NCBI RefSeq assembly: GCF_006345805.1
Contig: NC_042997.1
Span: 89,776,001 to 89,840,000 of the forward strand
DNA from: Octopus sinensis
Lineage: Eukaryota
Direction: 5' to 3'
DNA length: 64,000 nucleotides
Under the pieces are notes generated by a model. That model saw nothing but the letters and a program-made list of their open reading frames with translations, did not search any database and was not told the DNA's origin. The position numbers were made by a program, and so were the translations under genes. Shown piece after piece: positions 3,465 through 59,933 of this stretch (positions are counted from its first letter, which is position 1; each line of letters opens with the position of its first letter).

Positions 3465-3497
<33 letters not shown>

Positions 3498-5569: not shown

Positions 5570-5975
5570 TATACATTGGTTGTATGGTAAAGAAGCTTGC
5601 TTCCCAACCGCTTTGTTTCAGGTACAGACCCACTGCATGGTACTTGTACAAATGTCTTCTACTATAGCCTCAGGCCAACCAAAACCTTGTGAGTAGATTT
5701 GGTAGATGGAAACTGAAAGAACCCTTCATGTGTACATGCGTACATACATGTGTGTGTGTATTTGTGTTTGACCTCTAACTACTGATTAACAACTGGTGTT
5801 GGTTTATTTACTTCCATGTAACTAAGTGGTCCAGTGAAAGAAACTGATGGAATACAAGACTTTTAAAAAAACATAAACAACCTGAAAACATTCCTGGGGA
5901 GATTTGTTCAACTGAACCTTTTAAGGCAGTGCCCCAGCATGGCTATAGTCCAAAGACTGAAACAAATAAAAGATA
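5570..5975 (+). mobile_element. SINE family B (tRNA head, CORE-like segment, (TG)n, CR1-like tail)
   Basis: ...ggtaaagaagcttgcttcccaacc...cttctactatagcctcaggccaaccaaaaccttgtgagtagatttggtagatggaaactgaaag...aaggcagtgccccagcatggctatagtccaaagactgaaac. Confidence 0.7.
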
Positions 5976-12904: not shown

Positions 12905-13850
12905 GGGTGAAGAAAAGATCGAGACTGGGCACCTGGCACGTTGTTAGGCGTTAACAGCCCTCTACAAGTCAGGCAATAGATTTGGTGGATGTTCTGCTTT
13001 AGAAATTTATAGAGGATTAGTGGCAGGGAAGTGCAATGATGTTCTCGAGGAGACTGGGTGCTAGTTAGTCTGTTCCGGAGGACTTCCGGTTGGGAACTTC
13101 ATGAATAATTTCCAGATTTCCTTGGCCTGGCAGTGTTACCAGTGGGAGAGGGGCACTCCCAGTTTGAGATAAACTCTACAGACACAGATGTGCTGTCAGA
13201 CGGACTTGTCTGAGGGGTGTGCAGAGTGAGAAAACCATTCTGCATGCCCTCGTTCAGTGTCTGGGCATTACTGACTTGTGGGGTTATGTTGAACAGCTGC
13301 TGTTATGTGTGGGACAGATCCATCTGTTGGCTGAGTCTGTAGTGATGATCAAATTGCCACCCTCCATCAGTCAGGCAGGTAAAGCAATTTTCCTTTGCAT
13401 GGTGGCTGTGGCGAAAGAGGTTGTTTGGTGGACAAGGCTGAAAGCATGAAGACAGATGCATTCCTCTTTGGTAGAGCTCTCATTGACATTCACTTGAAAA
13501 GCATTCACTTGAAAAGGAAATTGAGAGTGGAGAGGGAAGTGCTGTCCTCGAGTGAATTTATTGAAAGGTCAGTGAACCTTGCGAAAATGGCAAGAGTGGA
13601 TGGTCCCTCTCTAAGTGAAGGCCTGTGAGTTGGAGAGAAGGAATTGGAGAGGGTGCATGCTCCTCTAGGGAAATCTTGCACAGTGCGGTTCCTCAATTAT
13701 CCTTAGTCCTTCCTGTACCAGGAGGGTTACATCTCTATTGCCACATTTTCTTTTTTAACCTTTGTATGCTATGCATAGGTCTCTTCTTTTTCAATGTATA
13801 CGGTGTATACTTTCTTTCATTTTTATATGTATATATGCATGTATGTCTGT
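12905..13850 (+). mobile_element. Tx1/L1-clade LINE 3' fragment (zf-RVT-like C-terminus plus 3' UTR)
   Basis: Reads NNFQISLAWQCY..RALPV*DKLYRH..C....SEKTILHALVQC..LWGYVEQLL...AKEVVWWTRLK...LKRKLRVEREVLS, with stops and frameshifts. Contains a 15-bp tandem duplication, cattcacttgaaaag x2. Confidence 0.7.
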
Positions 13851-14070
13851 GTGTGTTTGTGTCTGTGTTTGTCCCACCACCACCATTGCTTAACTACCGA
13901 TGTTGGTGTGTTTGCATCCCTGTAATTTAGCTGTTCAGCAGAAGAGACTGATAGAATAAGTACCAGGGTTACAAGGAATAAGTCCAGGGGTCAATTTCTT
14001 CAACTAAAAGGTGGTGCTCCAGCATGGCCACCGTCAAATGACTGAAACAAGTAAAAGGATAAAAGAATAC
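13850..14070 (+). mobile_element. SINE family B, 3' half
   Basis: Ends ggtggtgctccagcatggccaccgtcaaatgactgaaacaagtaaaag. Confidence 0.7.
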
Positions 14071-22029: not shown

Positions 22030-22222
22030 ACAAACAAGGACAGACAAAGGGATTAAGTCAATTATATCAACCCCAGTGAGTAACTGGTACTTATTTAATC
22101 GACCCCGAAAGGATGAAAGGCAAAGTCGACCTCAGCGGAATTTGAACTCGGAATGTAACGGCAGACAAAATACCACTAAGCATTTCGCCCAGCATGTTAA
22201 CACTTCTGCCAGCTTGCCGCAC
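22030..22222 (-). mobile_element. SINE family A, little-decayed copy
   Basis: Retains many CpGs (aatcgaccccgaaaggatgaaaggcaaagtcgacctcagcggaatttgaactcggaatgtaacgg). Confidence 0.75.
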
Positions 22223-22659
22223 TCCTGTTCAAGTTTACCTCTTGCCCTACACTTTAGTGATTTTGAAAAGAAACAGAAAATTTCCTCATTTCCCCCTAAT
22301 GTTATCTCATCATTGCTGTATTTTGGTAATATTTAGCATAGATTCTAAAATTGAATAACAACAAATATACACATCATATATGCTTGGAAAGTGAATTCTG
22401 TTAAGTATATAGCTTGGATTCTGTTTTTAAACTAGCAATGAACAAATTCTCAGGAAAAATATTTTTTTCTTTCTTTACTCTGGATCACAAAACTGACAAT
22501 ATAGTTATTTTTAGATCATAATCTTGGATATTTTAGCTCTATTTATGTATCTCTAGAGTTCATATAGGTTATAAGACATAAGTAAATCAATAACAACTGA
22601 CGTTTTTTGATATAAAATTTTCAAACTCTATGTCAATTATCATTTTTATCTTTTATTTG

Positions 22660-23030
22660 TTTTAGTCATTGGACTGCTGCCATGCTGGGGCACCATCTTG
22701 AAGAGTTCAGCTGAGCAAATCAACCCTAGTACTTATTTTTTTAAAGTCTGATACTTATTGTATCAATCTCTTTTGCTGAACTGCTAAGTTATGGGGGTTG
22801 TAAACAAATCAACACTGGTTGTTAAGCAGTGGTATGGAAAGCAAACATAGACACATGCATACATACACACAATAGGCTTCCGCACAGTTTCTGTCTACCA
22901 GATTCACTCACACAGCCTCAGTCACCCTGGGGCTATAGTAAAAGACATTTTACTCAAAGTGCTGCACAGTGAGACTAAACTTGAAACCATATGGTTGCAA
23001 AGCAAGCTTCTTAACCACACAGCCATGTTT
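22660..23030 (-). mobile_element. SINE family B
   Basis: Reverse-complement match including the tail (tttagtcattggactgctgccatgctggggcacc). Confidence 0.7.
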
Positions 23031-24659: not shown

Positions 24660-24870
24660 TGCAAAATATTGGTTTCAAATTTTTGCACAAGGCCTGCAAT
24701 TTCGGGGGAGGGGGTAAATTTATTACATTGACCCTATGACTCAATTGGTACTTATCTCATTGACCCCAAAAGGATGAAAGGTAAAGTCGACCTTGGCAGA
24801 ATTTGATCTCAGAATATAAACACAAGCATTTTGCCTGGTGTGCTAATGATTCTACCAGCTTGCTGCCTTA
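24660..24870 (-). mobile_element. SINE family A
   Basis: Consensus match by eye. Confidence 0.7.
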
Positions 24871-27800
24871 CAAATGCAAAATATTAACAATAAATTAACA
24901 TTGAAAATAATATGGCGCACAATTTGGCAATTTGCTTTACAGCCAACCACATTGATATGTGCAACACTCTTGCACCATAAACCTGATTTGACTAAAGTGT
25001 TATGAGGGAAATTTTGCTAATGGAAACTGTTAGGAAGCCCATTGTGTGCATGTGTGTATGTCTGCAGTTAATAATTACCAGTGCTGGGTACTGATATAAT
25101 CAGCTAAAACCAATTCATAAAACTAGCTGCCCAGCATATCTTCAGTCTGCTAACTGCAGAACTTGTCTGAAAAATTTTCTCATTGTTTTATTTGAACTTC
25201 ATCCTTTGATCACATGTTTACTAATCATTACCCCTTGTCTTCATTATGTGTCTTATTTTTCTAAGATTTAGATTGTATGCCATACTAAAAGTCATGTATC
25301 AACACTTTTTAATCTCATGTCAACAGTTCTGAAACCATTTTTAATCCTGTACATGTCTGTTTGGCATGGTTTGTGTTTTCATTCTCCCTTTCATGATATG
25401 GCCAAGAATCAATCATGAAACCCTTTCTCTCTTTATACATGGCTAAAAGTAGCAACCTGCCACTGATTTGTTTAGGATTCTTTTTAATGGTTTCAAACTT
25501 AGCTTTCCTTACAACCTGTAGCTTCAACAGTTGAATATGAAGGAATATGAATCCTATTTTAAATATTGAGATGAGACAGGTTCCTGTACAAAATACCAGC
25601 TTATATTATAGTTCTGTGAAATAACATTATGTGTGTGGCAATTAACAAAATTTTTCTCCTCTCTTTTTTCCTCTTCCCTCCCTATTGATGTGTGTGTGTA
25701 TATATATATGTACACACACACATATATATGTACACATAGATACTTTTTTCTCCTTTTTTTCCTTCACTTTCACCTTCTTTCTTTTCTTTGTTACTTACCA
25801 TTCTTCTTCTTCCTCTTTACAATGTTCCCTCTCATCCTTCCACTCAGTTCTCACTTCTATATTTTCTACTTCTTTTCTTCCACATTTTCCCCCCCATTTC
25901 TCATTTCTTCCCTGTTTCCTTCTCTATTCTCTTTTCCTTCCTTTCTCTCTGTTTCCCATATTTACTCCATCTCTTCTTAATGTACTCTGCCTTCTCCAAC
26001 TTAACACATTAAACTTGTCTTATTATACACTCTACGTTGCATTTATGAAAGTCCTTTCTTCTTTTCCTTGATGGTAGTTGTAGCAAGAATGCTCTATACT
26101 TCTAATGAAGCTGTAGGTTTTGCTTAAATTTTGTTTAGTTTATTCTGCTAACTCAATTACTATAAAGGGGCACCCGCGCATAAACAATTAACCTATAATT
26201 GTACAAAGTCATGGGTCACTTGTCATTAATAACTAACGTTGTTGTAAGCCAAAGCCAGTAATAGTGTTATAGAAATATTATTATTCTATACCATTTTTAT
26301 ATCCCTCACCTTTCCCTTGCAATAGCTATTAAATTAAGCCTTTTTAAAAAAAAAAAAATTTTACTCATAAAATAAAGATATGGAATAAGAATACTTATTG
26401 AACAGTTTTGGTATATATTTTCTTTGTAATATACTACACACTCTTTGTTAATGTTTAGCCATGAGAATAATGATGAAATTTTACTCCAATATGTTGCTTT
26501 TTTTGTTTTGTTCATTATTTAAAAAAATAACTCAAATTCAGTTGTAAAATCGTGGATTGCAAGATTGCTAAATTTTGGACCATTTCAGTTTCTTATGTTT
26601 GGGGTATATACAGGTAGAATCACTTGTTCTTCATGTTAAATTTTAACCAGTAATTTAGGTCCCCAAGAATATTCACATGAGGTTGCTAGTAGCTTTTACA
26701 ATGTTTACTTAATTACAAATAAATCTCATGAGTTCTATATCTAAATATTACTCCAATTGATTCACTAGCATCTTTGAACATTTTCCTTTGACTACAGGGT
26801 TAGAATTTTGTTATTTTGTAAATTTACTGTACCATTAGTCAAACTTTTCCATCTTTTGAAATCCTTATACATTTTCATCTTCATGCTTACAACTTGCTAT
26901 GGTCTCCTACTTTCTGCCATGCTTCTGTGATGTTATTGCAGTGTATAAATAGTGATTGTATATTCAGTTGTAGGGTGGTTTTGGCATGATTGAACAAGAG
27001 TCTGCTGTGTTACTTCTCCCTTCTTTTTTTTTTGTGAATCTCGGCCCTCTATATATGCCAACTGAATTTTTTTGGATCAAGGTACCATGTGAAATAGTGA
27101 ACAAAAGTAGCTTAATTTTAACATGAAACTGTATTAGTTCTTTATTAAAATTTTTGTGTGCTTAATTTTGGAAAATGTATTGACTTGTTTTAATTTTTAT
27201 TTGCTGTGATAAAATATTTTATTACTTCAATTCATTTTCATGCCTAGCTCCACCGCTAAGGATATTCTGATAGTTAAACATTGCTTTACAAAGTGTAAGG
27301 AAGAGAAGTCATTTCTTCCAAAATGGGTTTCCGTTTCCATCATTACTGATACTTTTTGTAAACTAGTATTGCATGTCTTCAGTACAGCCTGTTGCACAGT
27401 CAAGTTGTTGATAACTAAATTAGCACAACTGCTACCAGGTTAATTTGATGAGAACTCAGCAGGACAAAAAAAAAAAAAACAATACTTGTCTAAGTAGCAA
27501 ATGTGCAGAGACTAAAAATTCCAGTTTTATATCTAGTGCATTGTATAACCATTGATAGTGAGGAACCTCATAGCTTTCATTAAAGCATATCTGAGAAGGT
27601 TACTCTGATATAAATAGCCTTGTGTAGAGAATGACTTTTGGCTGTTTGGGGGATCTTCAGCACCCATTCTTGAATCTAACTTATATTGATACTAAATATC
27701 TTGCCTTGATTTGACTCTGGGTCATGCCAGTTGGGTGGAGAGGTCTTGCTTATGTCATCAAGAAAGGTATGAGTACTACTAAACAATTTTATTTCTTTTG

Positions 27801-30487: not shown

Positions 30488-30724
30488 TTAAACATTTATT
30501 TGTAATACAATATCAAAATTTTGGTTGCTTGAATCTGCAACCTTTTCATTGACAAAACATTCTGCTGCAGAATTTTTAGTCAGTGGACAAGTCAGAGTTT
30601 CAAGTGACAAAAATTTCAAGACCATATTACAAAGAAATGTTTTAAGTAAAGTTGATGGTCTTTGTATGCTTCTCTAAGGCTAATTTATGCCTTCCACATT
30701 GCAATCACCAACTATAGGAACAGG

Positions 30725-31010
30725 TGTGGGTGTGTGGTAAAAATTTGCTTCCCAACCACATGGCTCTGGGTTCAGTCCCATTGCATGGCACCTTGGACAA
30801 GTGTCTTCTTACTTATAGCCTTAGGCTGACAAAAGCCTTGTGAGTGGATGTGGTAGACAGAAACTGAAAGAAGTCCATATTTATTTATTTATTTATTTAT
30901 TCATTTATTTGTGTGTGTGTGTGTGTTTGTTCTCCACCAGCACTTGACAACCAGTGTCATTGTGTTTATGTTCCTATAACTTAGTGGTTTGGCAAAAGGG
31001 GCTGATAGAA
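30725..31010 (+). mobile_element. SINE family B
   Basis: Head gtgtggtaaaaatttgcttcccaaccacatggctctgggttcagtccca, with a B-box-like GGTTCAGTCC. Confidence 0.7.
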
Positions 31011-34199: not shown

Positions 34200-35620
34200 A
34201 CATAACGTAACTGTTAAGATGGGTCTTTTCTGACAATCTAGCTTCTTTCTTAGCAAACTCTTCAGTATTTTCCTCTCAACAAGGATCTGTTGAAGCACTT
34301 AATGCTGATTCCCATTCTAAAGAATGACAATCTCTCTGACCCTACTAACTTTTACATTATCATTCTCACTTCTAACATCTCAAAAGTGAAAGAACAGTCA
34401 TAAATAACTAGCTACCTCATAACTTGTAACTGCTCTCTGTTATTAGGGAGCATGAGCTCAGTTTGTGCAGAGCTACATCTACTTGAGACATGCTAAAGGC
34501 TCATGGTCACTGCACTTTTCTCCATGACTAAGTAGTAAAAGAAAAAGCAGTGCATAAATGATCAGAAGACTGAGGCATTTTCCAAGGCAAACTGTAATAA
34601 CACCAAGTTACAATCATCTTTTATCTCTTATTTGTTTTAGGCATTGAACTGTGGCCATGCTGGAGCACCATTTTAAAGGGTATCATCAAACAAATCAATT
34701 CTAGTACTTATTTTTTAAGCCTGATACTTATTCTGTCAGTGTCTTTTGCTGTATTGCTAAGTTACTGGGATACATACAAAGCTACACTACTTGTCAAGTG
34801 TGGGGGACAAGCATTGTGCAAACACACACAAATACATGTATGATGGGCTTCTTTCAGTTTCTGTCCACTAAACCCAATCACAAGGCTTTGATTAAGCTAG
34901 GGTTATAGCAGATGACACTTGTCCAAGGTGCTATGTAGTGAGACTGAACCCAAGACCACATATTTAGGAATTGAGCTTCTTAAACACACAGCTACTTGTG
35001 CATCTATTGTACACATATCACAGACACAGTTTCGTACTACATGGTCTTACAAATGAATTGTATAAACTAAAACTCCGAGGATCTCTTATGACAATTTCAC
35101 ATTTACAACATTGTCAGAAGTAAATCTGAAAGCCTAGGTTTCAACTTCTGTTGAAGAAAAAACTTCAGCTTTCATTATTCTCTTGACAAATCAGTGTAAC
35201 TGACAGTGAAGTATAGCTCACAGATCTAATGCAGTGCTGCTGCTATATATGCAAACATCCTAGACCACACCTAAAAAGAATACCATCTGACTAATTGAAA
35301 AAGACTCACTACTTAACAAAATGTTGCAATCATTGGTTCACAGATGTACTGTTTCTCTTCTCTGATTCTTCTGTTCCTACTGCAAAACCTGCTGAACTAG
35401 TAAACCAATTTGTTTCTCCTTCCATCATGTTACATTATTCTTTCTTAGATCTGTAGCTTTTTGAAGACCTTCCATACCTACATTTTTCCTACAAAAGTTC
35501 AAATTGAATACCAATCACATTGATCTCCTTAGTCTGGAAGAGCTTACAAAGTCCCTACATGCTTTTAGAGTAGTATAGCTGCTTGATCTGTTAGAATTAG
35601 AAGCTAAATCTTTCAAATTA
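34200..35620 (+). mobile_element. Highly degenerate L2/CR1-group LINE remnant, interrupted by a SINE (~34620-34995)
   Basis: LIPILKNDNLSDPTNFYIIILTSNISKV (cf. VVPIPKKG...NYRPISLTS..SKV) near 34305-34390. VKYSSQI*CSAAAIYANILD near 35205-35265. Confidence 0.5.
34620..34995 (-). mobile_element. SINE family B
   Basis: Reverse-complement match with tail. Confidence 0.7.
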
Positions 35621-35785: not shown

Positions 35786-36100
35786 TGGTCAACTTTGCCT
35801 TTCAACCTTTCAGGTCAATAAACTAAGTACCAGTTAAGCACCATGGTCAATGTAATTGACTTACCCCGCCATTGAAATTACATGCCTTGAGTTAAAATTT
35901 GAAATCAATATTAAAAAGGTCGATGTCTCAGAGTTTGATAACTTTTATTGAACTCTGAGACATCAACCTTGTTAATATTGATTTCAAATTTTAACTCAAG
36001 GCATGTAATTTCAATGGCGGGGTAAGTCAATTACATTGACCATGGTGCTTAACTGGTACTTAGTTTATTGACCTGAAAGGTTGAAAGGCAAAGTTGACCA
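35786..36100. repeat. Near-perfect inverted repeat, two 150-bp arms
   Basis: 35786-35935 is the reverse complement of 35951-36100 with only two mismatches seen. The 15-nt centre can pair further (two G-U pairs), leaving a 3-nt loop. Confidence 0.95.
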
Positions 36101-36612
36101 CTGCAGAATTTGATCTCAGAACATAAAAATGGACGAAATGTCACCAAGCATTTTGGCTGGTGTGCTAATGATTCTACCAGCTCGCTGCCTTCGACCTATT
36201 TCATATTAAAATGCAGTAAGTTTAGACATTGAAATTAATACTGTTAGAGCATCGAATTGAGGTGTTAGGTTATGGGGCAAATGCAAGTTCAAACCTCACT
36301 GGAACCATTATGTTGACTAATAAGCTTTTAACTGTCATTTTACTCAGTGACTAGCATCTTCCATACACTCTTTCACAGTTGAGTGTGTAACAACAATGGT
36401 TTAAAATATTGGCATTGGACCAGCAGATTTTTGAGATGGGGGAGTCAATTACATCAATCCCAGTATTTGACTGGCATTTATTTTATCAACCTTGGAAGGA
36501 TGAAAGGCAATGTCCACCTCAGCAGAAGTTTGAACTCATAATGTAAAGATAGATAAAATGTTGCTAAGCATTTTGCCTGGCATGTCAACTGTTCTGTCAG
36601 CTCACTGTCTTA
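35975..36612 (-). mobile_element. Two SINE family A copies (~35975-36192 and ~36395-36612)
   Basis: Consensus match by eye; the first forms the right arm of the 315-bp palindrome. Confidence 0.7.
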
Positions 36613-37859: not shown

Positions 37860-38914
37860 AGTGTATTTAATTAGGTGAAAGTTCTTTTTACCAGTTGCGC
37901 ATTTGTTATGCTTATCAAAAGATATTTTTTTAAGTGAGATAGAGTTCCTTTCTGATAGATTTTTTTCTCATCTGACTTTATGTTGGGTTTGCTGTCTCTT
38001 ATATGTGAAAAAAGAGGCTCCAGAGTTGTTTAAGATTTGCTTGGTTTCGTGCCTAAAATTTCTTGTGGACAATGGTCAATACAATTTTGATTGGTCATTA
38101 TAAAGGGGTCACGTGAATGTTTGAATGGGTGTTGGTGTTGGGGTAAGAAAATAGGCTCCAGAGATGTTAAAATTTGGCTAGTGTCGCGCCTAAAATTTCT
38201 TATTGGTCAGAATAAAGAGGTCACATGGATGTGGTCATAATAGAGAGGTCACATGAATGTTTAGAATGAATGTTGGTGTGGGTGGTGTATGGAGTTTTCG
38301 AAAATACCATTGTTGAAAATTCTTATTGTTCAGACTGGTCAGTAGACATCATGTGGATATTTTAAATAGCTTTTTAGGAGTGTAGTTAAGGAGTGTATTT
38401 TCCGCTTGACTGAATTTGAGCTGGATAAGTAAGTTCGTTTAGGACAGGAAGAGCTATATGTGTGTGTGTGTGTTTATATGTAGGGGCGCGTGTATATATG
38501 TGTGCGTGTGTGGGTACAATTTTCAATATTTATAGTTCTGCTGGCCTTGTGCCTGTATCGGGAAGCAACGTGTTTGTGTGAAGTCAATATTTACAGTCAT
38601 TTCCAAAAAATAGTGTTGGATGTTTTGCACCCGTATCAAATTATGTGTATGTGTGGAACCATATATTTGCGTGTGTCATGGTGTTAATATCTGGGTAAAA
38701 GTGTGTGTAGGGTGTGTGCAGGTGTAAGTGTGTTTGTTGTGGGTTTGTGTTAGGGGGATGTGTTTAGAAGTGGTCTGTATTTATTAATAAGGTGGGATTC
38801 CATGGTTATTCGCTGGGTATGAGTGGCATTGTCTTTAAATTTGTAGAGGGGAAAGATTCTAAAATTGGGATGAAGTTGTGCGGCACAGGTATCAATATGT
38901 GCACTAAGTGCTAT
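37860..38914 (-). mobile_element. Penelope-like element 3' fragment (C-terminus after GIY-YIG plus 3' region)
   Basis: Minus strand 38914-38750 reads IALSAHIDTCAAQLHPNFRIFPLYKFKDNATHTQRITMESHLINKYRPLLNTSP*, resembling the Penelope endonuclease C-terminus (..SxH...C....F.I.P.Y......R...E...I....P.LN). The downstream region carries a ~140-bp diverged tandem duplication (~38005-38290). Confidence 0.6.
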
Positions 38915-39030
38915 ATTTTAAAATATATATATATATATATACGTGTGATTGATTGATTGATTCTAGTTTCAGCTTATGAGCTGTGGCCATGCTGGGGCAC
39001 CGCCATTTGGTGTTGCTACTTGGTTTCACT

Positions 39031-42000
39031 TCACGAAAGCTTTCTAGCAACTGCCATTTGGTGCATGAGAGAGTTCGATGCAGCTGCCCTCATCTGCCCC
39101 TCCTGCCGTGAAGTTGGTTCATCTGGGACACCTGACAGGAAGAGATCCAGCTTCATTTTAAAGACATCTGCATCCACCCCATGCAGGTCTCTCAGGTTCT
39201 TCGGGAGGATATTGAAGAGCTGTGGGCCTCGGAAGCCCAGGCTATCACAGAATCTTGTCCTACATCTTGATGGCAAGTTTGGAGTCCTAGGCACCACGCA
39301 GTGGCGCCCAGTTCTGGCATTTGCGTAACTCTCGATGCCAATGTTCAGGACACTTCCCTCCAGGATCTTCCAGATGTATATTATGGCATATCTTTCCCGC
39401 CTACGCTCCAGGGAATATAGTTTTAATCTCTTGAGTCTTTCCCAGTAGCTTACATTCTGCATAGAGGTTATCTTCTTCGTGTAGCTACGTTGGATCGCCT
39501 CGAGCTCTGTGATCAACTTGACACTGGATGGTGACCATAACTGAGAGCAGTAGTCAAAGTGGCTTAGGACAAGTGTCCTCCAGAGGACCATCATGGTTTC
39601 TTGTTCTCTTGTTCTAAAGGTTCTGAGGATCCATCCGGCCAGTCGTCTACATTTCATTGCCAATTTAGCAACATGTACACGAAAGGTCGCGTCATCACTC
39701 ATGTAAATACCTAGGTCACGCACTGATTGTGCCTCTGGGATTGCTATTCCTCCGGGTCCAGTGTATTCATTGGGTATTGCATTTAGTTTTGCATGCTGAT
39801 AGTATAGAGCTTGAAACTTTTCAGCATTGAACTGCATGCTATTCTTTTCGGCCCACTTGTATATTTTGTCTAGCTCACATTGCAGGTGTTTAGTGTCCTC
39901 AGGGTTCTGTATTGCCTGTGAAACTTTTGTATCATCTGCATAACTTGTGATCGTGGCTCTCTGCGTGGCTGAGGGCATGTCTGAGAGGGCCATTATGAAC
40001 AGTAGTGGTCCCAGAACAGTGCCCTGCGGAACACCGCTCACTATTTGTGTGTTAATGGAAGTGGCCCCATTGGCCACTACCACCTGACTTCTATCTTTCA
40101 GGAAGTCATGAAGCCATTCTCCCAGTTTTCCAACTATGTTGAGATCACGCAGTTTGTGACATATCATTCCATGATCGACTTTATCAAAGGCCTTTGCAAA
40201 GTCGAGATATATCACTTCCACATTTGAGTGGTTGAGCATCCGTTTCAGCACCCAGTCATAGTGTTGTAGGAGCTGAGTTAAACAGCTTCTCCCTGGTCGG
40301 AAACCATGTTGGGTGTCGGGCAGCAAGTCATTCTCTTCAAGGAAGGTGATCAGCTTCCTTCTGACTATTCGTTCCATGACCTTGCTGATGTGTGAGGTCA
40401 GAGAGATAGGTCTATAGTTCTTGGCTTCCGCTCTGCTACCTCCTTTATGAATGGGGCATATTTTACCTTCCTTCAGTTTTCTTGGGAGTTTGCCAGCTGC
40501 AAGGAAGCTCTGAAAGAGGAACTGCAGTGGTCTTGCTAGGACTCTCTTACATGCTTTTAGGAGGATTGCCGGGAATCCATCGGGGCCAGTAGCTGAGTCT
40601 GTTTTCATTTTATCTATAGCCTTGATTACATCGTCTTCCTTTATATCAATGTAATCTATCGTCGCCGCCTCTGATTTTATATCTGCAGTGGTAAAAAAGT
40701 CAGTTGGATTGCTGATTTGGAGATGCCCAAGGGGTGGAGTGAAAACACTCTTGAATTGCTCATTCAGTATTTCACTTACCCTCATTGGTTTTCCTGTAAG
40801 TGTGCCATCCTTTTCGAGGAGTGGCCCTATTCTACAGTGCACCGTAGCTGTTTCTTTGGCATACCTGTAGAAAGCTCTGGGGTTAGATTTTATGTTGTCT
40901 ATAGCCCAGGCTTCTTTGTCTGCTCTTTCCTTTTCATGGGAGAGTTGCAGACATTTTTCGATTTCCAACAGTTTTATTTTTAGGCGGGACTTTTCACTGC
41001 TTTCAATCTGTTTGTTTAGGCGATTTGAAAATTTTGTACGCCGTCTCATTAAAATTTTCCTCTCTCTGGGGATTTTGTTCTTGTGTACAGTGGCCTTTCT
41101 CTCTGGGACACATTTGTAGCATATGGCTTGCATTACAGACATGAATTGTTGAAGTTTCACGTCGATGTCTGGCGAGGAGAGACATTTAGGCCAGTTTTGT
41201 TTGAGGATCTCTTTCTCAATTTGTTTCCAGTTTGCCTTATGGTAGTTCAAGCTGGAAAGATTCTGAGGGTTTCTTGTAGGATGCATGTCCGTGCTCTCTT
41301 TTGGCCCGTACATGGTCAGCTCTATCATGTTGTGATCCGAGAGTAGTGTCGGTGTCACTTTCACATTATGGATGAGATCCATGTCATTTGTGAAGCAGAG
41401 ATCCAGTGTGTTACCTGCCCTGGTTGGTTGGAGTATTACCTGCTCCATGTACAGGGTGTTGATGAGGTTCAGGAGGGACCTCGCCTGTCCTCGTTCACAT
41501 CTTGTCATTCCTGGGAGAGAAAGGCCCTCGGGCCATCTGACATTGGGCAGATTGAAGTCTCCCATAAGAAGTACACTTATGTGTTGTTCTAATGTGGTTA
41601 GAACTTCTTCTATTTTTATAAGGCAGTCTTCAAACTTGCCCACATGGCTTGGGGCATCTGGAGGGCGATATGTAGCACACACAACTACATCAAGTTGCCT
41701 AATATGTACAATTAGTGTGTCACACACCGAGTTTGAGTATGACAAGAGGACCTGGGGTGTGAGGTCCTCACGGATGTACATAGCAACACCTCCATGACTC
41801 CTTTCTTTCCTGTCGGTCCATAGTACAGCATACTGTGGTATGTGTAACTCCGCATCTGCTATATCCGGTTTCAGGTGCGTTTCCGTAAGTGCTATGCATA
41901 AGGCTTGATTGCATGCAACAAAGTCTCTCAGGAACGGGATTTTTGTCCTGTTACTGAGTGTTTGCAGTCCTCTGATGTTCAGTAGGAGCATCGAGGTGAG

Positions 42001-42135
42001 GTGTACGTTGTTGCCGGTGGTGTCCATCCTGGGTCTGTTTGCTGTGGTGGTCTGGTATATAGTGGGTAGTCCCACCTGCGGGCTTGGGTTTGATGAAGCC
42101 AGGTCAGCTGCTGTACAATCTTTTGTGCCATGCAC
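39031..42135 (-). CDS. LINE ORF2: APE-type endonuclease + reverse transcriptase (probable start at Met 42027, MDTTGNN...)
   Basis: Uninterrupted 1034 codons. APE motifs: LLLNIRGL, IALTETHL, YRPP, MGDFNLP, TLDLCFT, SDHNMI. RT motifs: KGGSRAEAKNYRPISLTS, QHGFRPGRSC, YLDFAKAFDKVDH, GVPQGTVLGPLLF, YADD, VRDLG. CR1-type C-terminus: YSLERRRER, GPQLFNILP. Confidence 0.93.
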   Translation of the reverse strand: MHGTKDCTAADLASSNPSPQVGLPTIYQTTTANRPRMDTTGNNVHLTSMLLLNIRGLQTLSNRTKIPFLRDFVACNQALCIALTETHLKPDIADAELHIPQYAVLWTDRKERSHGGVAMYIREDLTPQVLLSYSNSVCDTLIVHIRQLDVVVCATYRPPDAPSHVGKFEDCLIKIEEVLTTLEQHISVLLMGDFNLPNVRWPEGLSLPGMTRCERGQARSLLNLINTLYMEQVILQPTRAGNTLDLCFTNDMDLIHNVKVTPTLLSDHNMIELTMYGPKESTDMHPTRNPQNLSSLNYHKANWKQIEKEILKQNWPKCLSSPDIDVKLQQFMSVMQAICYKCVPERKATVHKNKIPRERKILMRRRTKFSNRLNKQIESSEKSRLKIKLLEIEKCLQLSHEKERADKEAWAIDNIKSNPRAFYRYAKETATVHCRIGPLLEKDGTLTGKPMRVSEILNEQFKSVFTPPLGHLQISNPTDFFTTADIKSEAATIDYIDIKEDDVIKAIDKMKTDSATGPDGFPAILLKACKRVLARPLQFLFQSFLAAGKLPRKLKEGKICPIHKGGSRAEAKNYRPISLTSHISKVMERIVRRKLITFLEENDLLPDTQHGFRPGRSCLTQLLQHYDWVLKRMLNHSNVEVIYLDFAKAFDKVDHGMICHKLRDLNIVGKLGEWLHDFLKDRSQVVVANGATSINTQIVSGVPQGTVLGPLLFIMALSDMPSATQRATITSYADDTKVSQAIQNPEDTKHLQCELDKIYKWAEKNSMQFNAEKFQALYYQHAKLNAIPNEYTGPGGIAIPEAQSVRDLGIYMSDDATFRVHVAKLAMKCRRLAGWILRTFRTREQETMMVLWRTLVLSHFDYCSQLWSPSSVKLITELEAIQRSYTKKITSMQNVSYWERLKRLKLYSLERRRERYAIIYIWKILEGSVLNIGIESYANARTGRHCVVPRTPNLPSRCRTRFCDSLGFRGPQLFNILPKNLRDLHGVDADVFKMKLDLFLSGVPDEPTSRQEGQMRAAASNSLMHQMAVARKLS

Positions 42136-42518
42136 AAAAAAGATTGTTGCTCAGCAGCTGCTCTTTCGACAACATCATGTTGGTGGTTTGTGGCACGCAC
42201 AACATCTGCGTACCTCCGCTTTGGGGCAAGTGGTGCGTGGTCCATCCCTTTTCCTTGTGTTGATGGTTTGTCCATCTGCCTCGTGTCTCTGTGGCAGGGT
42301 CCCCGATGTGCAAAGCGGCAGCCTGCACCTTCCTTTCCATGCCAGCAGGAACCTCTCAGGTAGAACCTGCACACCCGTGTGCGCTGTTTGTTTCCATCTT
42401 TTGCGGTTCCACTTCTATTCCTGGTTTTTTCACCCTTTGGTCCTGCTTGAGCTTTTCCTTTAGCTCTTCCAGTCCTTCTTTTAGTTCTTCCTCCTCCCTC
42501 TACCTCTTCACCGGGTTC
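41979..42518 (-). CDS. LINE ORF1-like frame with basic Gly/Lys/Arg region and CCCH zinc finger, interrupted upstream by one TGA
   Basis: Frame is open 42518-41979: EPGEEVEGGGRTKRRTGRAKGK...RVCRFYLRGSCWHGKEGAGCRFAH (C-x7-C-x8-C-x3-H). It overlaps the ORF2 start in a different frame. Confidence 0.65.
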   Translation of the reverse strand, partial: EPGEEVEGGGRTKRRTGRAKGKAQAGPKGEKTRNRSGTAKDGNKQRTRVCRFYLRGSCWHGKEGAGCRFAHRGPCHRDTRQMDKPSTQGKGMDHAPLAPKRRYADVVRATNHQHDVVERAAAEQQSFLCMAQKIVQQLTWLHQTQARRWDYPLYTRPPQQTDPGWTPPATTYTSPRCSY

Positions 42519-43479
42519 TCAGTCTCCATGGCCCTTGCTGCCGGTTGGAGAACTATACACCTGTTTGTTGTTTACACACCTGTCTTCGTCTTTTGTTTTT
42601 TTGTAAATTCCAACTATATATGTCATTGGAGAGATCAAAAGCAAGGCCAAAATCAGTGGGATTTAGTGTCTGACTGTAAAGGAACTCCATTAAATCCAGC
42701 CAAATGCTTCATTCAGCTCACTACTGTTCCTGGCTGTTCTTTTCCAATTCCTCACATTTCCCAATATTCAGCTGGAAACATTGAGTTACCCAAATTAAAT
42801 GTGAGATATAATAACTACTTTGATTTCTTTCAGAACCCCCCCCCCCCCCAACAAAAAACAAAAGAAAATAGCATTATGCTTGAAATTGTTTTTCTTAAAA
42901 ATGGGTTTAGTTGAGGAGAGGTATTGTCTTTGATTGTTACAGAAATTTCGAGACTAAGATTGATCCTCTTGGTATTCAGTAGGGCAGTGATAAATTGTTG
43001 ACAAATTAATCTCCACTTCAAACTACCTCATTAACATCACACAGTTAACTGAACTGATTTGCATATCTCACTTACCAACTTTCTATATTCTGGCAGTTAA
43101 AAAATAAAAAAAAAATGTTTTTATGCTACAGTTGATAATTCTTTATCTAAAATGCTTGGAATATTTCAAACTTCAAAATGCTTGAATATTAATAGTTTAT
43201 TCCCATGCTGTGAGGGAAGATTTGTATAAATTTGATACTGGTCCTGTTTCACATGACATGTAACAGTTTTACTTTGGGAATGTTTTGGTTTTTACAAAAA
43301 AAAAAAAAAAAAAAAAAATCTGACTTATTACACTTTGACTTCAACTTTTTCCACACGAAACAGTTCTATGTCACTCTAGCTGTTTACAATTTTTTAAGCT
43401 ATCTCACACTCTCACAATACAATTCTATTTTACCTTAAGCTTTTCAAGTGCTTTCTGGAATTTTTCTATATGTAACTGA

Positions 43480-43830
43480 GGTTGCTGTGTGGTTAAAAAG
43501 TTCACTTGGTAGCCATGTGGTTTTGGGTTCAGTTTTGGGTGAGTGTCTTCTGTTACAGTCCCAGACTGACCAATTCCTTGTGAGTAAATTTAGTAGACAG
43601 AAACTGTGTGGAAGTCCATGACACACACACATGAATTGTGTGTAGGTGTGTTTGTGTTTGTTTCCTTCCCCATTCCTTCATTTGTTTATGAGTAACTAGC
43701 AGTTCAGCAAAAGAGACTGATAGAATAAGTACCAGTCTTAAAAAGTAACTACTAGGGTTGGTCTGATTGACTAAACTGTTCAAGGCAGGGCCCCAGCATG
43801 GCCAAGATCCAGTGACTGTCTAGTAAAAAG
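43480..43830 (+). mobile_element. SINE family B
   Basis: Consensus match with tail aaggcagggccccagcatggcc. Confidence 0.7.
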
Positions 43831-43899
43831 ATAAAATATCATTTTTGCTTTCCTGTAATTTCCACAGATTTTATCTTAACAACTAAACAACAACAGTAG

Positions 43900-44040: not shown

Positions 44041-44574
44041 TGTGTCATTTGTGCGCTCGCCAATGTGTGACATTTAAGAAACCAGTTTCAGTACTCTCAG
44101 TGGTGTCATTATTGTGTGCTATCTGTAACATGAACAATGCAAGCTGTCTGGAAAATGATTTCTATATGCTTAGACTTTATAACCTCAACCATTGTCTATG
44201 ATGAAATAATCCTTTAAAACTATTCCATTCTTCTCCCATCATGCTGGTGAATTAAAGTTTATCCTTTGCATTATGTATATTTGCTGCCTGTTAGAGTCTA
44301 CTTACTAAATGATTGACAATTAGATGTGGCACTTCAGGAAAGTAACACTCTATTCCACTACACATATACAATCTTGCTTTGGTTGCACACATGCACACAT
44401 ACTCACCACACACGGTATATTAGTCCTATGTACTCATGTTCCAGCTGCTTACAAAATGTTGACTATAATTACATATGCTCCAGTTCACATATCTGTACAG
44501 TTTTGTTTTGAAATGCATATTTGGACTGGCTTAAACTAATGCATAGACAAAGCAGCTGCTTAGAAAATTAATAA

Positions 44575-45265
44575 TGGTTTCAAATTTTCACACAGAACCA
44601 GCAAGGTTCAGGGGAGGGGGTATGTCAATTACATTGATCTCCAGTATTCAACTGCTATTTCTTTTATCAACCTTGAAAGGATGAAAAGCAAAGTTGTCCT
44701 CAGCTGAGTTTGAACTCAAAACGTAAAGACAGACGAAATACTGCTAAGCATTTTGTCTAATACTATAATGATTTTGCTAGCTCCACTGCCTTAGAATAAT
44801 AATAATAATGATTTCAAATATTTGCACAAGGCCAACAATTTCAGGGAAGGGGTAAGTCAATTTTATCGCTCACCACCACTCCTGCTCAACTGGTACTTAT
44901 TTTATTGTCTTCAAAAGATGAAAAGCAAAGTCGACTTCGGCAGAATTTGAACTCAGGACATGAAGACAAACGAAATGCCACTTAGCATTTTGCCTGGCAT
45001 GCTAACAATTCTGCTAGCTTGCCACCTTAGAATAGTAATAAAATTAATAATAGTTTCAAATTTTGCCACAAGGTCAGCCATTTTGAAGGAGGGGATGTGT
45101 TGATTACATTGACCTCAGTGCTCAACTAGTACTTAATTTATCAACCCTGAAAGGATGAAAGGCAAAGTCAACCTCAGATGAATTTGAACTCAGAACATAG
45201 TGACAGACGAAATACCACTAAGCATTTCATCCATTGTGCTAATGATCCTGTCAGCTGACCACCTT
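44575..45265 (-). mobile_element. Three head-to-tail SINE family A copies
   Basis: Three ~220-bp units, each starting (a)aatggtttcaaatttt-like, separated by AAT-rich linkers. Confidence 0.8.
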
Positions 45266-45544
45266 TCTTCTGTTTCCAGGTTTCATGTGTTTCTATTTAA
45301 CAAAGAAAAGATAAAAAACACAGCAAATATCTGCTGATTATCTGTAATCTCTAAACTGAGATAAGGGACATATACTCTTTTATTATGATCTGTCATTGTA
45401 ACACCACAATGTATGCTATTTATTTACATTCGTATTGGTATTTTATCATTGTAATAATCTATCATGAGGTTTTCCTTTCTTCCTGGTGTAAAAAATTGTG
45501 CTTATCGAAGTTAAATGCACATTCAGAATGTAATCTTTTATCTT

Positions 45545-45860
45545 TTACCTGTTTCAGTCGTTTGACTGTGGCCATGCTAGGGTACCACTTAGAAGGGTTT
45601 TTTAGACAAATGAATTAATACCAGGATTTGTTTTTTATTTAAGTCTAGAACTTATTCTATTGGTCTCTTTTGATGAACTGCTAAGTTGCAGGGATGTAAA
45701 CACATCAGTGCTGGTTGTCAATTAGTAGTGGCATTGAACACAGACACAAAGCTTTGGTCAGCCCAAGGCTATAGTAGAAGACACTTGCCTATGCAGTGGG
45801 ACTGAACCTGGAACCATGTGGTTGGGAAGCAAGCTTCTTACCACACAGCCACACATGTGC
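45545..45860 (-). mobile_element. SINE family B
   Basis: Reverse-complement match; tail stem-loop CAGTC-AAAC-GACTG intact (45555-45568). Confidence 0.7.
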
Positions 45861-50259: not shown

Positions 50260-50775
50260 ATGTGTGTGTCTGTGTTTGTCCCTCACCACTGCTGTTGGTT
50301 TATTGACATCCCTACAACTTACTGGTTTGACAAGAAGAGACTGATAGAATAAGTACCAGGCATATCAAAATTAAAAAAGGCACGGGGGGGGGGTCAATTC
50401 ATCCGACAAAATTCTTCAAGGCAGTGTCCCATATTTTTGTTTGTCCACTCAGTTGTGTCTATCAGTCTGTGTGTGTGTGTGTGTGTGTGTATATATAATT
50501 CACACACACACGTATGTATGTGTCCACATTTATATCTATTAGATAAATGTTAATGTCTTTATGTGTGTTCATGTGACTGCTACTGCTTGGCAACTGGTGT
50601 TAGTGTATTTATGCCCCCATAACTTGGTAGTTCAGCAAATGTGTTCAATAGAGTAAGTACCAGGCTCAGCAAGAAACAAGTACTGGGGTTGATTCATTTG
50701 ACTTAAATTTTTTTCAAGGTGGTGGCCCAGCATTGCTGCAGTCTAATGACCGAAACAAGTAAAAGACAAAGATAA
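50260..50775 (+). mobile_element. Two SINE family B 3' halves
   Basis: gatagaataagtaccagg...ggggtcaattc/gttgattc...aaggtggtggcccagcattgctgcagtctaatgaccgaaac. Confidence 0.6.
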
Positions 50776-53029: not shown

Positions 53030-53600
53030 CCCTTTTTGATACCATCTCACTTGAGATCACCCCTGGTTTTATGATATAAACATCCTGTTTTAAAGTGACC
53101 TAAATCAGAAACTTCCATAAGAATTTCATGTTGTTCCACCTTAATAATGTCAAAGTTATTTAGGTAAATTCTTCAGTATTCGGTGCTTTCATGACTGGGT
53201 GGTTAAGAAACTCACTTTGCAACCATGTAGTTTTGGGTTCAGTCACACTACATGGCACCTAGAGCAAGTACTTTCTACTATGGCCCCAGAATAAGTAATG
53301 TCTTGGGAGTGAAATACATGTATGTGTGTGTCTTCACGAGTCTGTTTGTTTCCCCTCACCTCATTTCTCAACAACTGATGTTGGTTTGTTTATATCCCTG
53401 TAACTTTGCAGTTTGGTGAAAAAAGATCAATAGAATAAGTACCAGTTTTAAAAATAAGTATTGGGATCAATCTGATTAAAACCCTTCAGTGCAATGCCCT
53501 AGCATAGCCACAGTCCAATGACTGAAACAAGTAAAAGATAGAATATTTTCAAAATTAATTGTAGACAGTATAGTTCGTTAAAAATATGGCAATGAAAGGG
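53030..53600. mobile_element. piggyBac-like MITE, family 2, interrupted by a SINE (~53190-53540)
   Basis: TTAA|CCCTTTTTGATACC...GAAAGGG|tgaa; reverse-complement similarity to 62647-62870. Confidence 0.55.
53190..53540 (+). mobile_element. SINE family B, inserted in a piggyBac-like MITE
   Basis: Full head-to-tail match; stem-loop CAGTC-CAAT-GACTG at 53511-53524. Confidence 0.7.
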
Positions 53601-54225: not shown

Positions 54226-54579
54226 CACACAACGCATCACATACTCATGCACACACACAAACACCTTCCTCCCTTCCTCTGTTTCTGCAAAGCTTTGATA
54301 TTCATTTCTCATTATCATGTAGTGCAGTTTCCGTCTAGCTTTTTAATGAAGAGGGTAACTTTTTTTTGCCAACAAAGTCCAGAACTCTACAAGCTTCTGT
54401 CATCCCACTACCAATAATGTTTTCACTACAACTATCTCTTGTAAGTAATTAAATCCCGGTGACAGGAAATACCAACAATATCTAACAAGTCATTTGTACA
54501 GTTCATGAAAATAGGTGCAAGTGTGACTGTGCATGCACAGGCACGACTGTGCGGGCATAGCTGAGCAGGTGGAAACATG

Positions 54580-54970
54580 TCTGTGTGGTTAGAAGCTTAC
54601 TTCCGAACCACATGGTTCTAAGTTCAGTCCCACTACATGATACCTCCGGCAAGTGTCTTCTACTATAGCCTCAGGCAGATCAAAGTCTTGTGAGTAGATT
54701 TGGTAGACAGAAACTGAAAGGAGCCCATTGAATGTGTGTGTGTGTGTGTGTGTTTATTCATATGTGTGTCTGTGTTTGTCCCTCCACCTTTGCTTGAAAA
54801 CCAATGCTGGTGTGTTTATGTTCCCATAACTTAGTGGTTCAACAAAAGAGACCAATAGAATAAGTACTAGGCTTATAAAGAATAAGTCCTGGGGTCGATT
54901 TCTTTGACTAAAACTATTAAGGTGGTGCTCCAACATGGTTGCAGTCAAATGACTAAAACAAGTAAAAGAA
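54580..54970 (+). mobile_element. SINE family B
   Basis: Full head-to-tail match. Confidence 0.75.
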
Positions 54971-57500: not shown

Positions 57501-58599
57501 TAGCATGATTATCCATAAGCATATGGAGCAATAGTATTTTGAAATTCTTACTTGTGTACCCATTAACATACCCATAACTTTGATATTTTCACAGAGAATC
57601 CATTGATGAACACAATATTAATTGATATCAAGCAGTGTATACTTGTTACTTTGGCTCTTTTTTTGGTGGACAGGATGGGTAGTAGGAATGCATGGCTCTA
57701 CATTCTTACTGGGCATTAGAAATGCTTTCAAGCTTCTTTGTAACAAACTAATGAAGAGGTACTACTAGTCAGGTGCAACCTGAATCTGAGACAAGTTTGC
57801 GAATCATCTATTATAAAGCATGTTGCCAAATTGGTATTTCATTTATGTTTATGACTCAACTTGCACATTCTTGTCAAGTAGATTAGTTTTGAGATTAGAA
57901 ACTCAGTCTTCTCTTTTGACTTTGATAAGACTCTGTTAAGATTGTTCAAATGTTCTTGAGGAAATAATCATAGCTCCAAATTTTTTTGTCAGGTGTGTAT
58001 TCAGGATCTGTAGAAGGTCCAAGCATTTCACCAGTCACTCCCTTGTCCCTGGCTGTTTCATCATCTTGGAGAAAGGGAATGGACATCGAATGAGCATTGG
58101 GAGTAAAGGGAATGGACATTGAGGAGGTGGAGTGAGTGGGTGTTGGGGGAAAGGGAATAGCATTGCTTCATTATGGTACACAGGTTTATGTGCTGAAAAC
58201 AGGTTTAGCTTGACAATCTTGTGTTTACTCTTTGTAGACAGCCTGATTATATTAGAACTACCAAAATAGCAATCAGTATAATCATTTCTTTTTTCTCTCC
58301 CTATATTATGGGTATGGTAAAACACATTGTTCACTTCTTTGTACAACTAATCATGCAGTCCACTTGAACAAGCAGAGCCAATTTAATGTAGTGTCTGTTG
58401 TTTACCATGGTCACTTATACAACAACCAAAGTATACCTGGCATATTTTCATAAGACCCAGGGTGGTAAATGAAAGAAAAGGGTTTGGATGGTTTTTACAT
58501 TCATAGAGCACATAAATGGTAAGGATCTAAGCAAATATTCTGAAAACAAAAAATATTACGAATATAATTATAAAAAACAAAAAAGGCACAAGCATTGCT

Positions 58600-58940
58600 G
58601 TGTCGTTAAGAAGCTGGCTTTTCAACTATGTGATTTTAGATTCAATCCCACTACATGGCACCTTGAGCAAGTGTCTCCTGCTATAACCTCAGGCCAACTA
58701 ATGCCATGCGAGTGAAGTTGGTAAATGGAAATTGTGTGGAAACCTGTCGTTTGTCATACAGACTCCCATCACAGTCAGTGTTTACATCCTTATAACTTAG
58801 TGGTTTAGCAAAAGAGATTGATGGAATAAATACAAGACTTAAAAAAAGATCATATGTACTGGGACTGATTTGTTTAACTAAAACCCTTCAAAGTGGTGTC
58901 CCAGCTTGGCTATAGTCTATTGATTAAAACAAGTAAAAGG
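58600..58940 (+). mobile_element. SINE family B
   Basis: Full head-to-tail match. Confidence 0.7.
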
Positions 58941-59933
58941 TAGTCTCATCTGAAAAACTATACATAATTCTTAAAAATTAATGATAGTTTTGAAATTAGC
59001 ATCAGAATTGCTCTTTAGATGATACAGAACTGTCTTCAGAAATTCTTTGTTAGCCAGTATTATCTCTAAAACTATTTAGAATCTTATTTGCCTACAAGTC
59101 TTGTTTACATTCTTTAAATTTAATGTAATTAAAAATAAAATAAATAAAATAAATTTTATATTACAGAAAAAAATGACTGCAGTTTTAGTTTTCTTTAATG
59201 GATAAAAATATTTATCTTCAAATTCAACTCCAAAATTCTACATATCCCTTAATCTGTGAAATTAAATTTCATGGTTATTCCAGTAATGATGTTAAATATC
59301 TACCAAAAGATAGAATTGGTATTTTCTACAAGTCCCATTGCCTTGATAAACTTGACATATCTCAACAAAAAATAGTTTCAAATATGGCATTCTTCAACAA
59401 AAGTTAAAAGTAATGAAATTTTTAGTGGATACGGCATTTTCTGCTGTAAATCATTCTTACATTTGTTATGTTTATATAAAACTTTATGTAAATATAAAAC
59501 TATTTAAGTTGGACTTGTCATGTGCCAAAAAGTTTAGAGCATTTTAGAAATAAGGTTAAATTTCTAGTAGCTGCTTTGTATTCCAGCTAATGCACTTCCA
59601 TAACTTTTACCTTCTAATCCAACCACTTGTCCTAGATACATGATCTTTGCAAACTATTCAACTATTTCTAGTGGCTGATTGGTTGGCTATCAAAAGTTGA
59701 TTGTACATAGATTTACTTGATTAGTTCCATTGGTTTAATCAAATATATTTGTGTTGTCATTAGATCTCCATAGAAATTCCAATTTATTTATTACAGTGAA
59801 AGGTTGTTGGTTTTAACTCTTTAGCTATTCTCAACTTTAAATGATTACCTTTCAGCTTCGAGCAATAATCTAGACTTACAGCGCATTATCTTCTGGTACT
59901 CTCTGTAAAGGGAGAGATTATTTTATGGGATCT

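Follow-up and report, generated by a model that had tools for sequence, protein, structure and literature searches.

A two-hairpin 3' tail common to CR1/L2-lineage LINEs and a CORE-SINE family of Octopus sinensis, and its probable role in mobilisation in trans

The window analysed here is a stretch of 64,000 nucleotides of Octopus sinensis (contig NC_042997.1, positions 89,776,001 to 89,840,000 of the forward strand), and positions refer to it unless another sequence is named. It contains one copy of a long interspersed element (LINE), a non-LTR (long terminal repeat) retrotransposon of the CR1/L2 lineages located at 38947..42612 on the minus strand, and ten copies of a CORE-type short interspersed element (SINE), family B. 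Both elements, which reside in the same genome, end in a homologous 39-nt module formed by a predicted hairpin 1, a spacer base, a predicted hairpin 2 and AAAC, after which comes a short tandem repeat. Sequence comparison and analogy with known LINE/SINE pairs make it quite probable that this module is ancestral to an octopod LINE clade, that the CORE-SINE tail was acquired from the clade and that the SINE was mobilised in trans via the module.

The minus-strand tail of the LINE, at 39004-38947, reads GGCGGTGCCCCAGCATGGCC-A-CAGCT-CATA-AGCTG-AAAC-TAG-(AATC)4 and is followed by unrelated (TA)n-rich DNA; the first-pass annotation of this DNA had described the ending from CAGCT to the AATC repeat, and it is found as described. 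The module begins 26 nt past the stop codon of the second open reading frame (ORF2). Hairpin 1 (38985..39004), predicted by both RNAalifold and RNAfold, corresponds to GGCGGTGCCCCAGCATGGCC, which folds as GGC-G-GUGC-CCCA-GCAU-G-GCC: a 3-bp outer stem GGC/GCC, a G.G 1x1 mismatch, a 4-bp inner stem GUGC/GCAU and a CCCA loop, and it is nearly invariant across the octopod LINEs and the SINE. The spacer A at 38984 precedes hairpin 2 (38970..38983), CAGCU-CAUA-AGCUG, which is indicated by a stem pairing test and by the same two programs. Then come AAAC (38966..38969), unchanged after hairpin 2 throughout the eight LINE tails and the SINE consensus, a TAG (38963..38965), and the terminal (AATC)4 (38947..38962), a repeat that differs between LINE subfamilies and from the (AAAAGAT)n of the SINE.

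The LINE tails compared with this one are the DNA past the ORF2 stop codon of seven relatives with 57-87% protein identity, from at least two octopod genera. Protein searches give few close relatives of the window LINE, the nearest named ones being from Argonauta hians, and most of what a search with the C-terminal 250 amino acids returns is no more than 50% identical and belongs to crustaceans and marine metagenomes. The tail of L001 (87% amino acid identity) is GGCGGTGCCCCAGCATGGCC-A-CAGCT-CATG-AGCTG-AAAC-TAGATAAAATGAAAA, that of L002 (62%) is GGCGGTGCCCCAGCATGGCC-A-CAGC-CTTCGC-GCTG-AAAC-TTATAAATGAATAAATAAATA and that of L003 (64%) is GGTGGTGCCCCAGCATGGCC-G-CAGC-CCTAGC-GCTG-AAAC-(AATTA)n. 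Two tails are from Argonauta hians: L004 (57%), with GGCGGTGCCCCAGCATGGCC-C-CAGCC-GGCAAT-GGCTG-AAAC-TGA(ATACAAG)n, and L125 (61%), with GGTGGTGCACCAGCATGACC-A-CAGCCG-ACT-CGGCTG-AAAC-ATTTTAAAACATTAAAAC. L126 (62%) is like L125 except that it shows GGCC and CAGCC-AACTC-GGCTG, and L127 (63%) ends in GGCGGTGCTCCAGCATGGCC-T-CAGCC-ACT-GGCTG-AAAC-GGTT(AAAAGAAT)2. Wherever the stop codon is annotated, the module starts 1-27 nt past it. Since the module directly follows the ORF2 stop in these relatives, it is ancestral to the LINE clade and constitutes essentially the whole 3' untranslated region (UTR). Whether other copies end alike had been set beforehand as the test of a genuine LINE end, and the seven relatives, which share the module after their ORF2 stop, answer it in the affirmative.

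In the window, a 20-mer search allowing up to five mismatches gives 11 sites and no more, ten SINE tails besides the LINE tail, and all ten non-LINE sites are at the 3' end of a single repeat family of about 330 bp, family B. Its consensus tail is GG(C/T)GGTGC(C/T)CCAGCATGGCC-(G/A)-CAGTC-(C/A)AAT-GACTG-AAAC-AAGT(AAAAGAT)1-2. The 11-mer CCAGCATGGCC occurs seven times with one mismatch at most, against 0.51 expected from shuffles, and none of 100 shuffles reaches seven. On the plus strand, family B copies lie at 5577..5975 (tail module 5925-5963), 43542..43837 (from 43784, degenerate and with AAAC lost), 53195..53546 (53490-53528), 54576..54969 (54921-54959) and 58590..58942 (58892-58930), together with two 3' parts, at 13840..14064 (14010-14048, the best preserved module) and 50584..50766 (50718-50756). 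On the minus strand they lie at 22644..23027 (22659-22697), 34616..34992 (34634-34672) and 45533..45851 (45551-45589). The copies are 12-25% diverged from the consensus and are therefore old. The 5' arm of the stem is GTC or ATC in nine of the ten copies and the 3' arm is GAC in seven, so that CAGTC/GACTG represents the family consensus and not an accident of a single copy. The three SINE examples of the first-pass annotation (14010-14048, 45555-45568 on the minus strand and 53511-53524) are correctly placed, and its count of about ten copies with a CAGTC/GACTG stem agrees with the ten tails found and with the consensus.

The same annotation had called family B CORE-like, a label supported by two observations. 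The consensus contains the CORE block ACCTTGGGCAAGT, including the CCTTGGG expected of a CORE-SINE, the conserved centre of the CORE domain inside a block of about 25 bp (PMC5786205). It also aligns with an approximate MIR consensus, with a score of 64.5, where shuffles score 30.9 +/- 5.3 and reach 46 at most. Its head aligns with the tRNA-like head of the same MIR consensus (GTGGTTAAGA..., GGTTCAGTCCC). ARAGORN and Rfam, run on the window, call no tRNA in the decayed family B copies and nothing else.

The window LINE and the SINE consensus are identical at about 33-34 of the 39 module positions (about 85-87%), and the likeness stops at the module, with none upstream of it. A covariance model trained exclusively on the seven external LINE tails, with no window sequence and no SINE, and run with filters off, gives 62.6 bits for the window LINE tail and recovers all ten SINE tails, with scores from 46.7 bits (14010-14048) to 12.5 bits and E-values from 2e-12 to 0.04 (the degenerate copy at 43542..43837); nothing further in the 64 kb is below E = 0.6. 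Two wider scans are negative: the 17-mer GGTGCCCCAGCATGGCC gives 120 new loci in JGI metagenome contigs, all of them bacterial coding sequence without hairpin or AAAC, and the structured pattern CCAGCATGGCCNCAGN{7,11}CTGAAAC gives no match in viral contigs and five chance matches in prokaryote genomes. The density of family B, ten copies in 64 kb, would favour the idea that the LINE tail is a SINE fragment which, in this one copy only, landed by chance at the 3' end or recombined onto it. However, seven LINE copies from different samples and from Argonauta show the same module at the same place with terminal repeats of their own, the LINE has no SINE sequence before the module, and its stem variant CAGCU is different from that of the SINE, which leaves such a juxtaposition hardly credible.

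RNAalifold, applied jointly to the SINE consensus and the eight LINE tails, predicts a pair of adjoining hairpins. The same two-hairpin fold is the minimum free energy (MFE) structure that RNAfold gives to the tails of the LINE (-18.0 kcal/mol, z = -3.1) and of the SINE (-17.8 kcal/mol, z = -2.9), as well as to L127, L004 and L128, a relative with 43% identity (z = -3.1). In hairpin 2, standard pairs fill 95.5% of the cells, a share that drops to 0-50% after the 3' arm is displaced by 1-3 columns. Pairs 1-3 are constant. At pair 4, all eight LINEs have C-G and the SINE has U-A. At pair 5, the SINE and four LINE tails have C-G, L001 and the window LINE have U-A, and in L002 and L003, whose stem has 4 bp, the bases are unpaired (C.C). 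Two covarying pairs are reached by 17 of 500 shuffles and the covariation score by one of 500, so that the covariation in these nine sequences is suggestive rather than overwhelming. The first-pass annotation had read the difference between the LINE and SINE stems as a double compensatory swap: the compensation is real, with two pairs varying on both sides, but it corresponds to two separate events. They are independent because most LINE relatives show CAGCC/GGCUG, the SINE changed at pair 4, and the window LINE and L001 changed at pair 5; CAGCC/GGCUG is the probable ancestral stem, from which the SINE lineage and the window/L001 lineage would each have undergone one transition. That stem-loop is only half of the element, and hairpin 1 is its more deeply conserved part.

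For hairpin 1 the distant relatives weigh most, because the near-identical octopod tails cannot covary there. L128 (43% amino acid identity) shows GGC-G-GAUUA-AAC-UAAUU-G-GCC, then GGUC-AUGU-GACC, UAAAC and (AAATAAC)n, with a z-score of -3.1, and L131 (40%) shows AGG-C-GGCUA-CCCA-UAGCC-A-CCU, then GGGA-UUU-UCCC, UAAAAC and (CATTA)n, with a z-score of -2.7. In L129 (42%) hairpin 1 is GGU-U-GUAG-UCAA-CUAC-C-GCC. The hairpin 1 design, that is, 3 bp, a 1x1 mismatch, 4-5 bp and a loop of 3-4 nt, has a background frequency of 0.0016 per position in all the sequence compared; given this background, chance is an unlikely explanation (roughly 10^-3) for three of the four distant relatives having it immediately before their terminal repeat. 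In a structure-guided alignment made by hand, 86 of 86 cells of hairpin 1 are paired, against 26-57% in slid versions, and 53 of 53 of hairpin 2, against 3-55%. These relatives bear on the direction of transfer. Template switching is in principle possible both ways and sequence identity gives no direction, so the module could have arisen in the SINE and been captured by the ancestor of the octopod LINEs. But the relatives with 40-43% identity, from marine metagenomes, keep the hairpins, (U)AAAC and a tandem repeat with a different sequence, from which it follows that the module design predates its octopod sequence version, and the 3' UTR of the LINEs consists entirely of the module. Transfer from SINE to LINE is thus very improbable, if a little less so than chance juxtaposition.

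The terminal repeat after AAAC varies by LINE subfamily (AATC, AAAAGAAT, AAATT/AATTA, ATACAAG, AAAACATT, AAATAAC and CATTA) and the hairpins are constant; in the relatives the repeats are located at 737-796 of L127, 3168-3221 of L001, 3169-3240 of L003 and 5393-5460 of L004. The repeat unit appears to evolve fast and may set the priming specificity of each LINE subfamily. Among the eight LINE tails, the end of L127, GGTT(AAAAGAAT)2, is the closest to the SINE end, with 15 of 18 positions matching; L127 is a metagenome sequence. The window LINE copy is apparently young, as its ORF2 is intact, and because a young copy with (AATC)n is set against old SINEs with (AAAAGAT)n, it is unlikely to be the maker of these SINE copies. 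On the proposal of the first-pass annotation that this LINE family or a close relative drives the SINE, the shared ancestral tail gives support at the level of the family, and it is the window copy itself that becomes improbable, by its age and its terminal repeat. The more likely driver, judging from the tail sequences, would be a relative, L127 for instance, that ends in a repeat of the (AAAAGAAT)n type, or else a subfamily whose stem is CAGUC/GACUG.

Several points weigh against acquisition of the tail from the LINE clade and mobilisation through it. The (AATC)4 of the window LINE and the AAGT(AAAAGAT)n of the SINE match at only 8 of 18 positions. Since the SINE copies are 12-25% diverged and the ORF2 of the LINE is intact, the activity periods of the two elements need not overlap, a comparison in which the LINE is represented by one copy. 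No LINE with the exact SINE stem CAGUC/GACUG is found among the eight LINE tails, and the covariation of hairpin 2 is based on few sequences (n=9). Among the distant relatives, hairpin 2 of L129 is weak and L132 (39% amino acid identity) lacks hairpin 1 and shows a single, different hairpin; the 100% pairing of the deep-relative alignment is biased upwards because it was fitted by hand to the structure. Lastly, the trans-mobilisation is putative, and its support comes from analogy.

The alternative that these points favour most is that the tail is a relic of the birth of the SINE, the bulk of whose amplification was due to another clade, RTE or Dong, reading the A-rich terminal repeat. RTE and Dong-R4 are reported as recently active and abundant in octopus (PMC9115989, PMC13282606), the LINE family is present once in the window against ten SINEs, and the terminal repeats of the SINE and the window LINE differ. 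Against this, CR1 (13 families, 787 insertions) also figures among the recently active LINEs of O. vulgaris (PMC13282606), LINE copies are normally few relative to SINE copies in pairs of this kind, and the SINE consensus keeps both hairpins, AAAC and a compensated stem, as expected under selection on master copies. An RTE or Dong driver is consequently unlikely, yet clearly less so than either chance juxtaposition or transfer from SINE to LINE.

If the module was instead the means of mobilisation as well as its mark, the following sequence of steps is proposed. A tRNA-headed CORE-SINE would have taken the module from a member of the CR1/L2-lineage octopod LINE clade, in which the module and the short tandem repeat form nearly the entire 3' UTR. 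The ORF2 protein of the LINE would bind the 3' RNA structure of the SINE transcript in trans, as in UnaL2 and ZfL2; reverse transcription would then be primed on the nicked target DNA, with the terminal repeat as its starting place, and the SINE would thereby amplify at the expense of the LINE. By this analogy, the two-hairpin/AAAC module is the presumed recognition handle of the reverse transcriptase (RT) and the terminal repeat the presumed priming site. In stringent LINEs, the ORF2 region between the endonuclease (EN) and the RT binds the cognate 3' stem-loop (PMC4176376), and in UnaL2/UnaSINE1 the shared tail, including an internal mismatch and a bulge, is needed for retrotransposition, and a SINE with this tail is mobilised in trans (PMC1636434). 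A broader reading, offered tentatively and held to be less probable than its opposite, is that the module is a deeply conserved 3' handle of a marine-invertebrate CR1-like clade, of which a low-copy member with a competent ORF2 may be the past, and possibly the present, engine of the octopus CORE-SINE expansion.

The assignment of the window LINE to the CR1/L2 lineages of the Jockey superfamily holds up. Its ORF2 (39031..42135, minus strand) has 1034 uninterrupted codons, and in this single 1034-aa frame Pfam identifies Exo_endo_phos_2 (4e-12) followed by RVT_1 (4e-31), that is, an apurinic-type (APE) endonuclease N-terminal of the RT, the arrangement characteristic of these lineages. ORF2 is 87% identical to P0001, and its true start is probably the Met of MDTTGNN...LLLNIRGL. 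The nearest solved structures in a sequence search of the Protein Data Bank (PDB) are L1 ORF2p and R2; this relationship is generic, so such a search does not separate CR1 from L2. The C-terminal pattern of ORF2, ...YCxQxWSP...LExxQR...SLExRRxRxDxI..., looks nearer CR1 than L2, and the tentative preference for CR1 proper is based on this motif pattern. In the window LINE and its relatives, which lack poly(A), the 3' end is a hairpin with a short tandem repeat behind it, as in CR1 elements, where this is a conserved hallmark (PMC4316615).

The ORF1 frame of the window LINE (41979..42518, minus strand) is open, overlaps ORF2 and contains a CCCH zinc finger, CRFYLRGSCWHGKEGAGCRFAH. This finger and the downstream block ...RRYADxVR...EQQxFL..QQLxWLH are kept both by L002 and by the ORF1 of relatives with 40% identity. 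In the relatives with 40-43% identity, L128, L129 and L131, the CCCH finger stands beside a PHD finger, and the window copy keeps only the CCCH part; the PHD finger reaches 24.7 bits in L129, against a cut-off of 24, and is below the cut-off in L128 and L131. Within the Jockey superfamily, ORF1s with a PHD finger occur in the CR1 and L2 lineages, and the CCCH finger is absent from the list of ORF1 domain types in the same work (PMC4120745). The CR1/L2-group label of the first-pass annotation is upheld by the Pfam EN and RT domains of ORF2 together with the PHD finger in the ORF1 of the relatives. No in-frame ATG is found upstream of the CCCH finger in the ORF1 frame of the window copy, so ORF1 may be frameshifted, damaged or 5'-truncated even with ORF2 intact. 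A short METENPVKR* ORF is located in a different frame near it. The distant relatives L128 (2-1075), L129 (2-1138) and L131 (2-1204) show a longer ORF1, of at least 360-520 aa, with PHD, CCCH and a Q-rich C-terminus; they come from TARA ocean and other marine metagenome/Logan assemblies, and their ORF2 identity is 39-43%.

Searches of the window with the LINE relatives by tblastn give the 38947-42612 locus as sole match, that is, one copy of the family in 64 kb. Its 3' end is exact and its 5' end approximate, since the target-site duplication is not clear: none stands out at this locus beyond a weak candidate, ACATATATAG, beside the (TA)n tract. As this tract adjoins the (AATC)4 end, any target-site duplication would be masked. 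The 3' flank shows a dense (TG)n/(GT)n-rich region at 38440-38760 and (TA)n low-complexity DNA at 38920-38946, and just upstream of the presumed 5' end, read on the minus strand, there are about 17 consecutive Gs (42830-42850) and about 27 consecutive Ts (43290-43320). A 38-aa RT-like fragment at 34284-34397, 45% identical to P0006, adjoins the family B copy at 34616-34992 and is probably what is left of another old LINE. The window also contains a second SINE-like family, family A, more numerous than family B, with 14-16 self-BLAST partners per copy, at 1523-1859, 2650-4114, 14466-14873, 22048-22218, 24665-24893, 30721-30881, 35787-36611, 44568-45265 and 57297-57468. Its units are often head to tail, two or more together (e.g., 14466-14873 and 44568-45265). 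The 3' end of family A is different and has no two-hairpin module; therefore its LINE partner, if any, is another element.

A tail shared between a LINE and a SINE is textbook biology, and the octopus case is another example of an established rule. The expansion of SINEs is regarded as specific to octopus. The interest of the case comes mainly from the large share of SINEs in octopus genomes, where they are the largest repeat class: they account for about 40% of the transposable element (TE) content (PMC8967140) and, in O. vulgaris, for 11.6% of the genome (PMC13282606). A partner clade and a 39-nt handle provide a concrete element for mutation and a marker for dating LINE/SINE co-activity; hairpin 1 is a testable structural element beyond the stem-loop first noted; and a better classification of the SINE follows, as tRNA-Core-CR1-like. 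If the broader reading of a CR1-like engine behind the expansion is true, the focus for octopus SINEs would move from RTE and Dong LINEs to a CR1-like driver.

Among known octopus elements, the SINEs are mainly 'tRNA-Core' and 'tRNA-Deu' (PMC8967140), the former label being also used in PMC13282606. A tRNA-derived SINE with a CORE domain from octopus (Ohshima and Okada 1994) is known here through later citations, as OR1 (PMC4824008) and OR2 (PMC4758252); family B is like OR1/OR2 in its CORE domain and tRNA-like head, and is set beside them by description only. In the searchable literature, taken apart from Repbase/Dfam notes and the 1994 OR1/OR2 paper, no LINE partner of the octopus CORE-SINE is named. 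The CORE-SINE/CR1 and CORE-SINE/L2 pairs of bivalves show a similar tail match, of 35-61 bp at 72-95% (PMC11481361), compared with 39 nt at about 85-87% in octopus, and differ in that the octopus family is from a cephalopod. Amniote CR1 and its SINE partners (e.g., turtle Pol III/SINE) resemble the octopus LINE in an ORF2 with APE and RT and, in the relatives of the octopus LINE, a PHD-type ORF1 (PMC4120745), and also in a very short 3' UTR with a hairpin and a short tandem repeat kept across subfamilies (PMC4316615). In contrast to the conserved octamer microsatellite of amniote CR1, the octopus repeat varies by subfamily (AATC, AAATT, AAAAGAAT, ATACAAG), the hairpin sequences are different and the host is a mollusc. 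With eel UnaL2/UnaSINE1 and zebrafish ZfL2-1 and ZfL2-2, of the L2 clade, the octopus pair shares a short conserved 3' tail common to LINE and SINE, and an ending in which short tandem repeats, not poly(A), come after a stem-loop. UnaL2 also has a conserved internal mismatch, a U-U with a bulged C (PMC1636434), where the octopus hairpin 1 has G.G. Recognition of the tail by the ORF2 protein is established for UnaL2/ZfL2 (PMC4176376), and a similar recognition in octopus is suggested by this analogy. Unlike UnaL2 and ZfL2, the octopus module has an unrelated primary sequence and consists of two adjacent predicted hairpins instead of one long stem.

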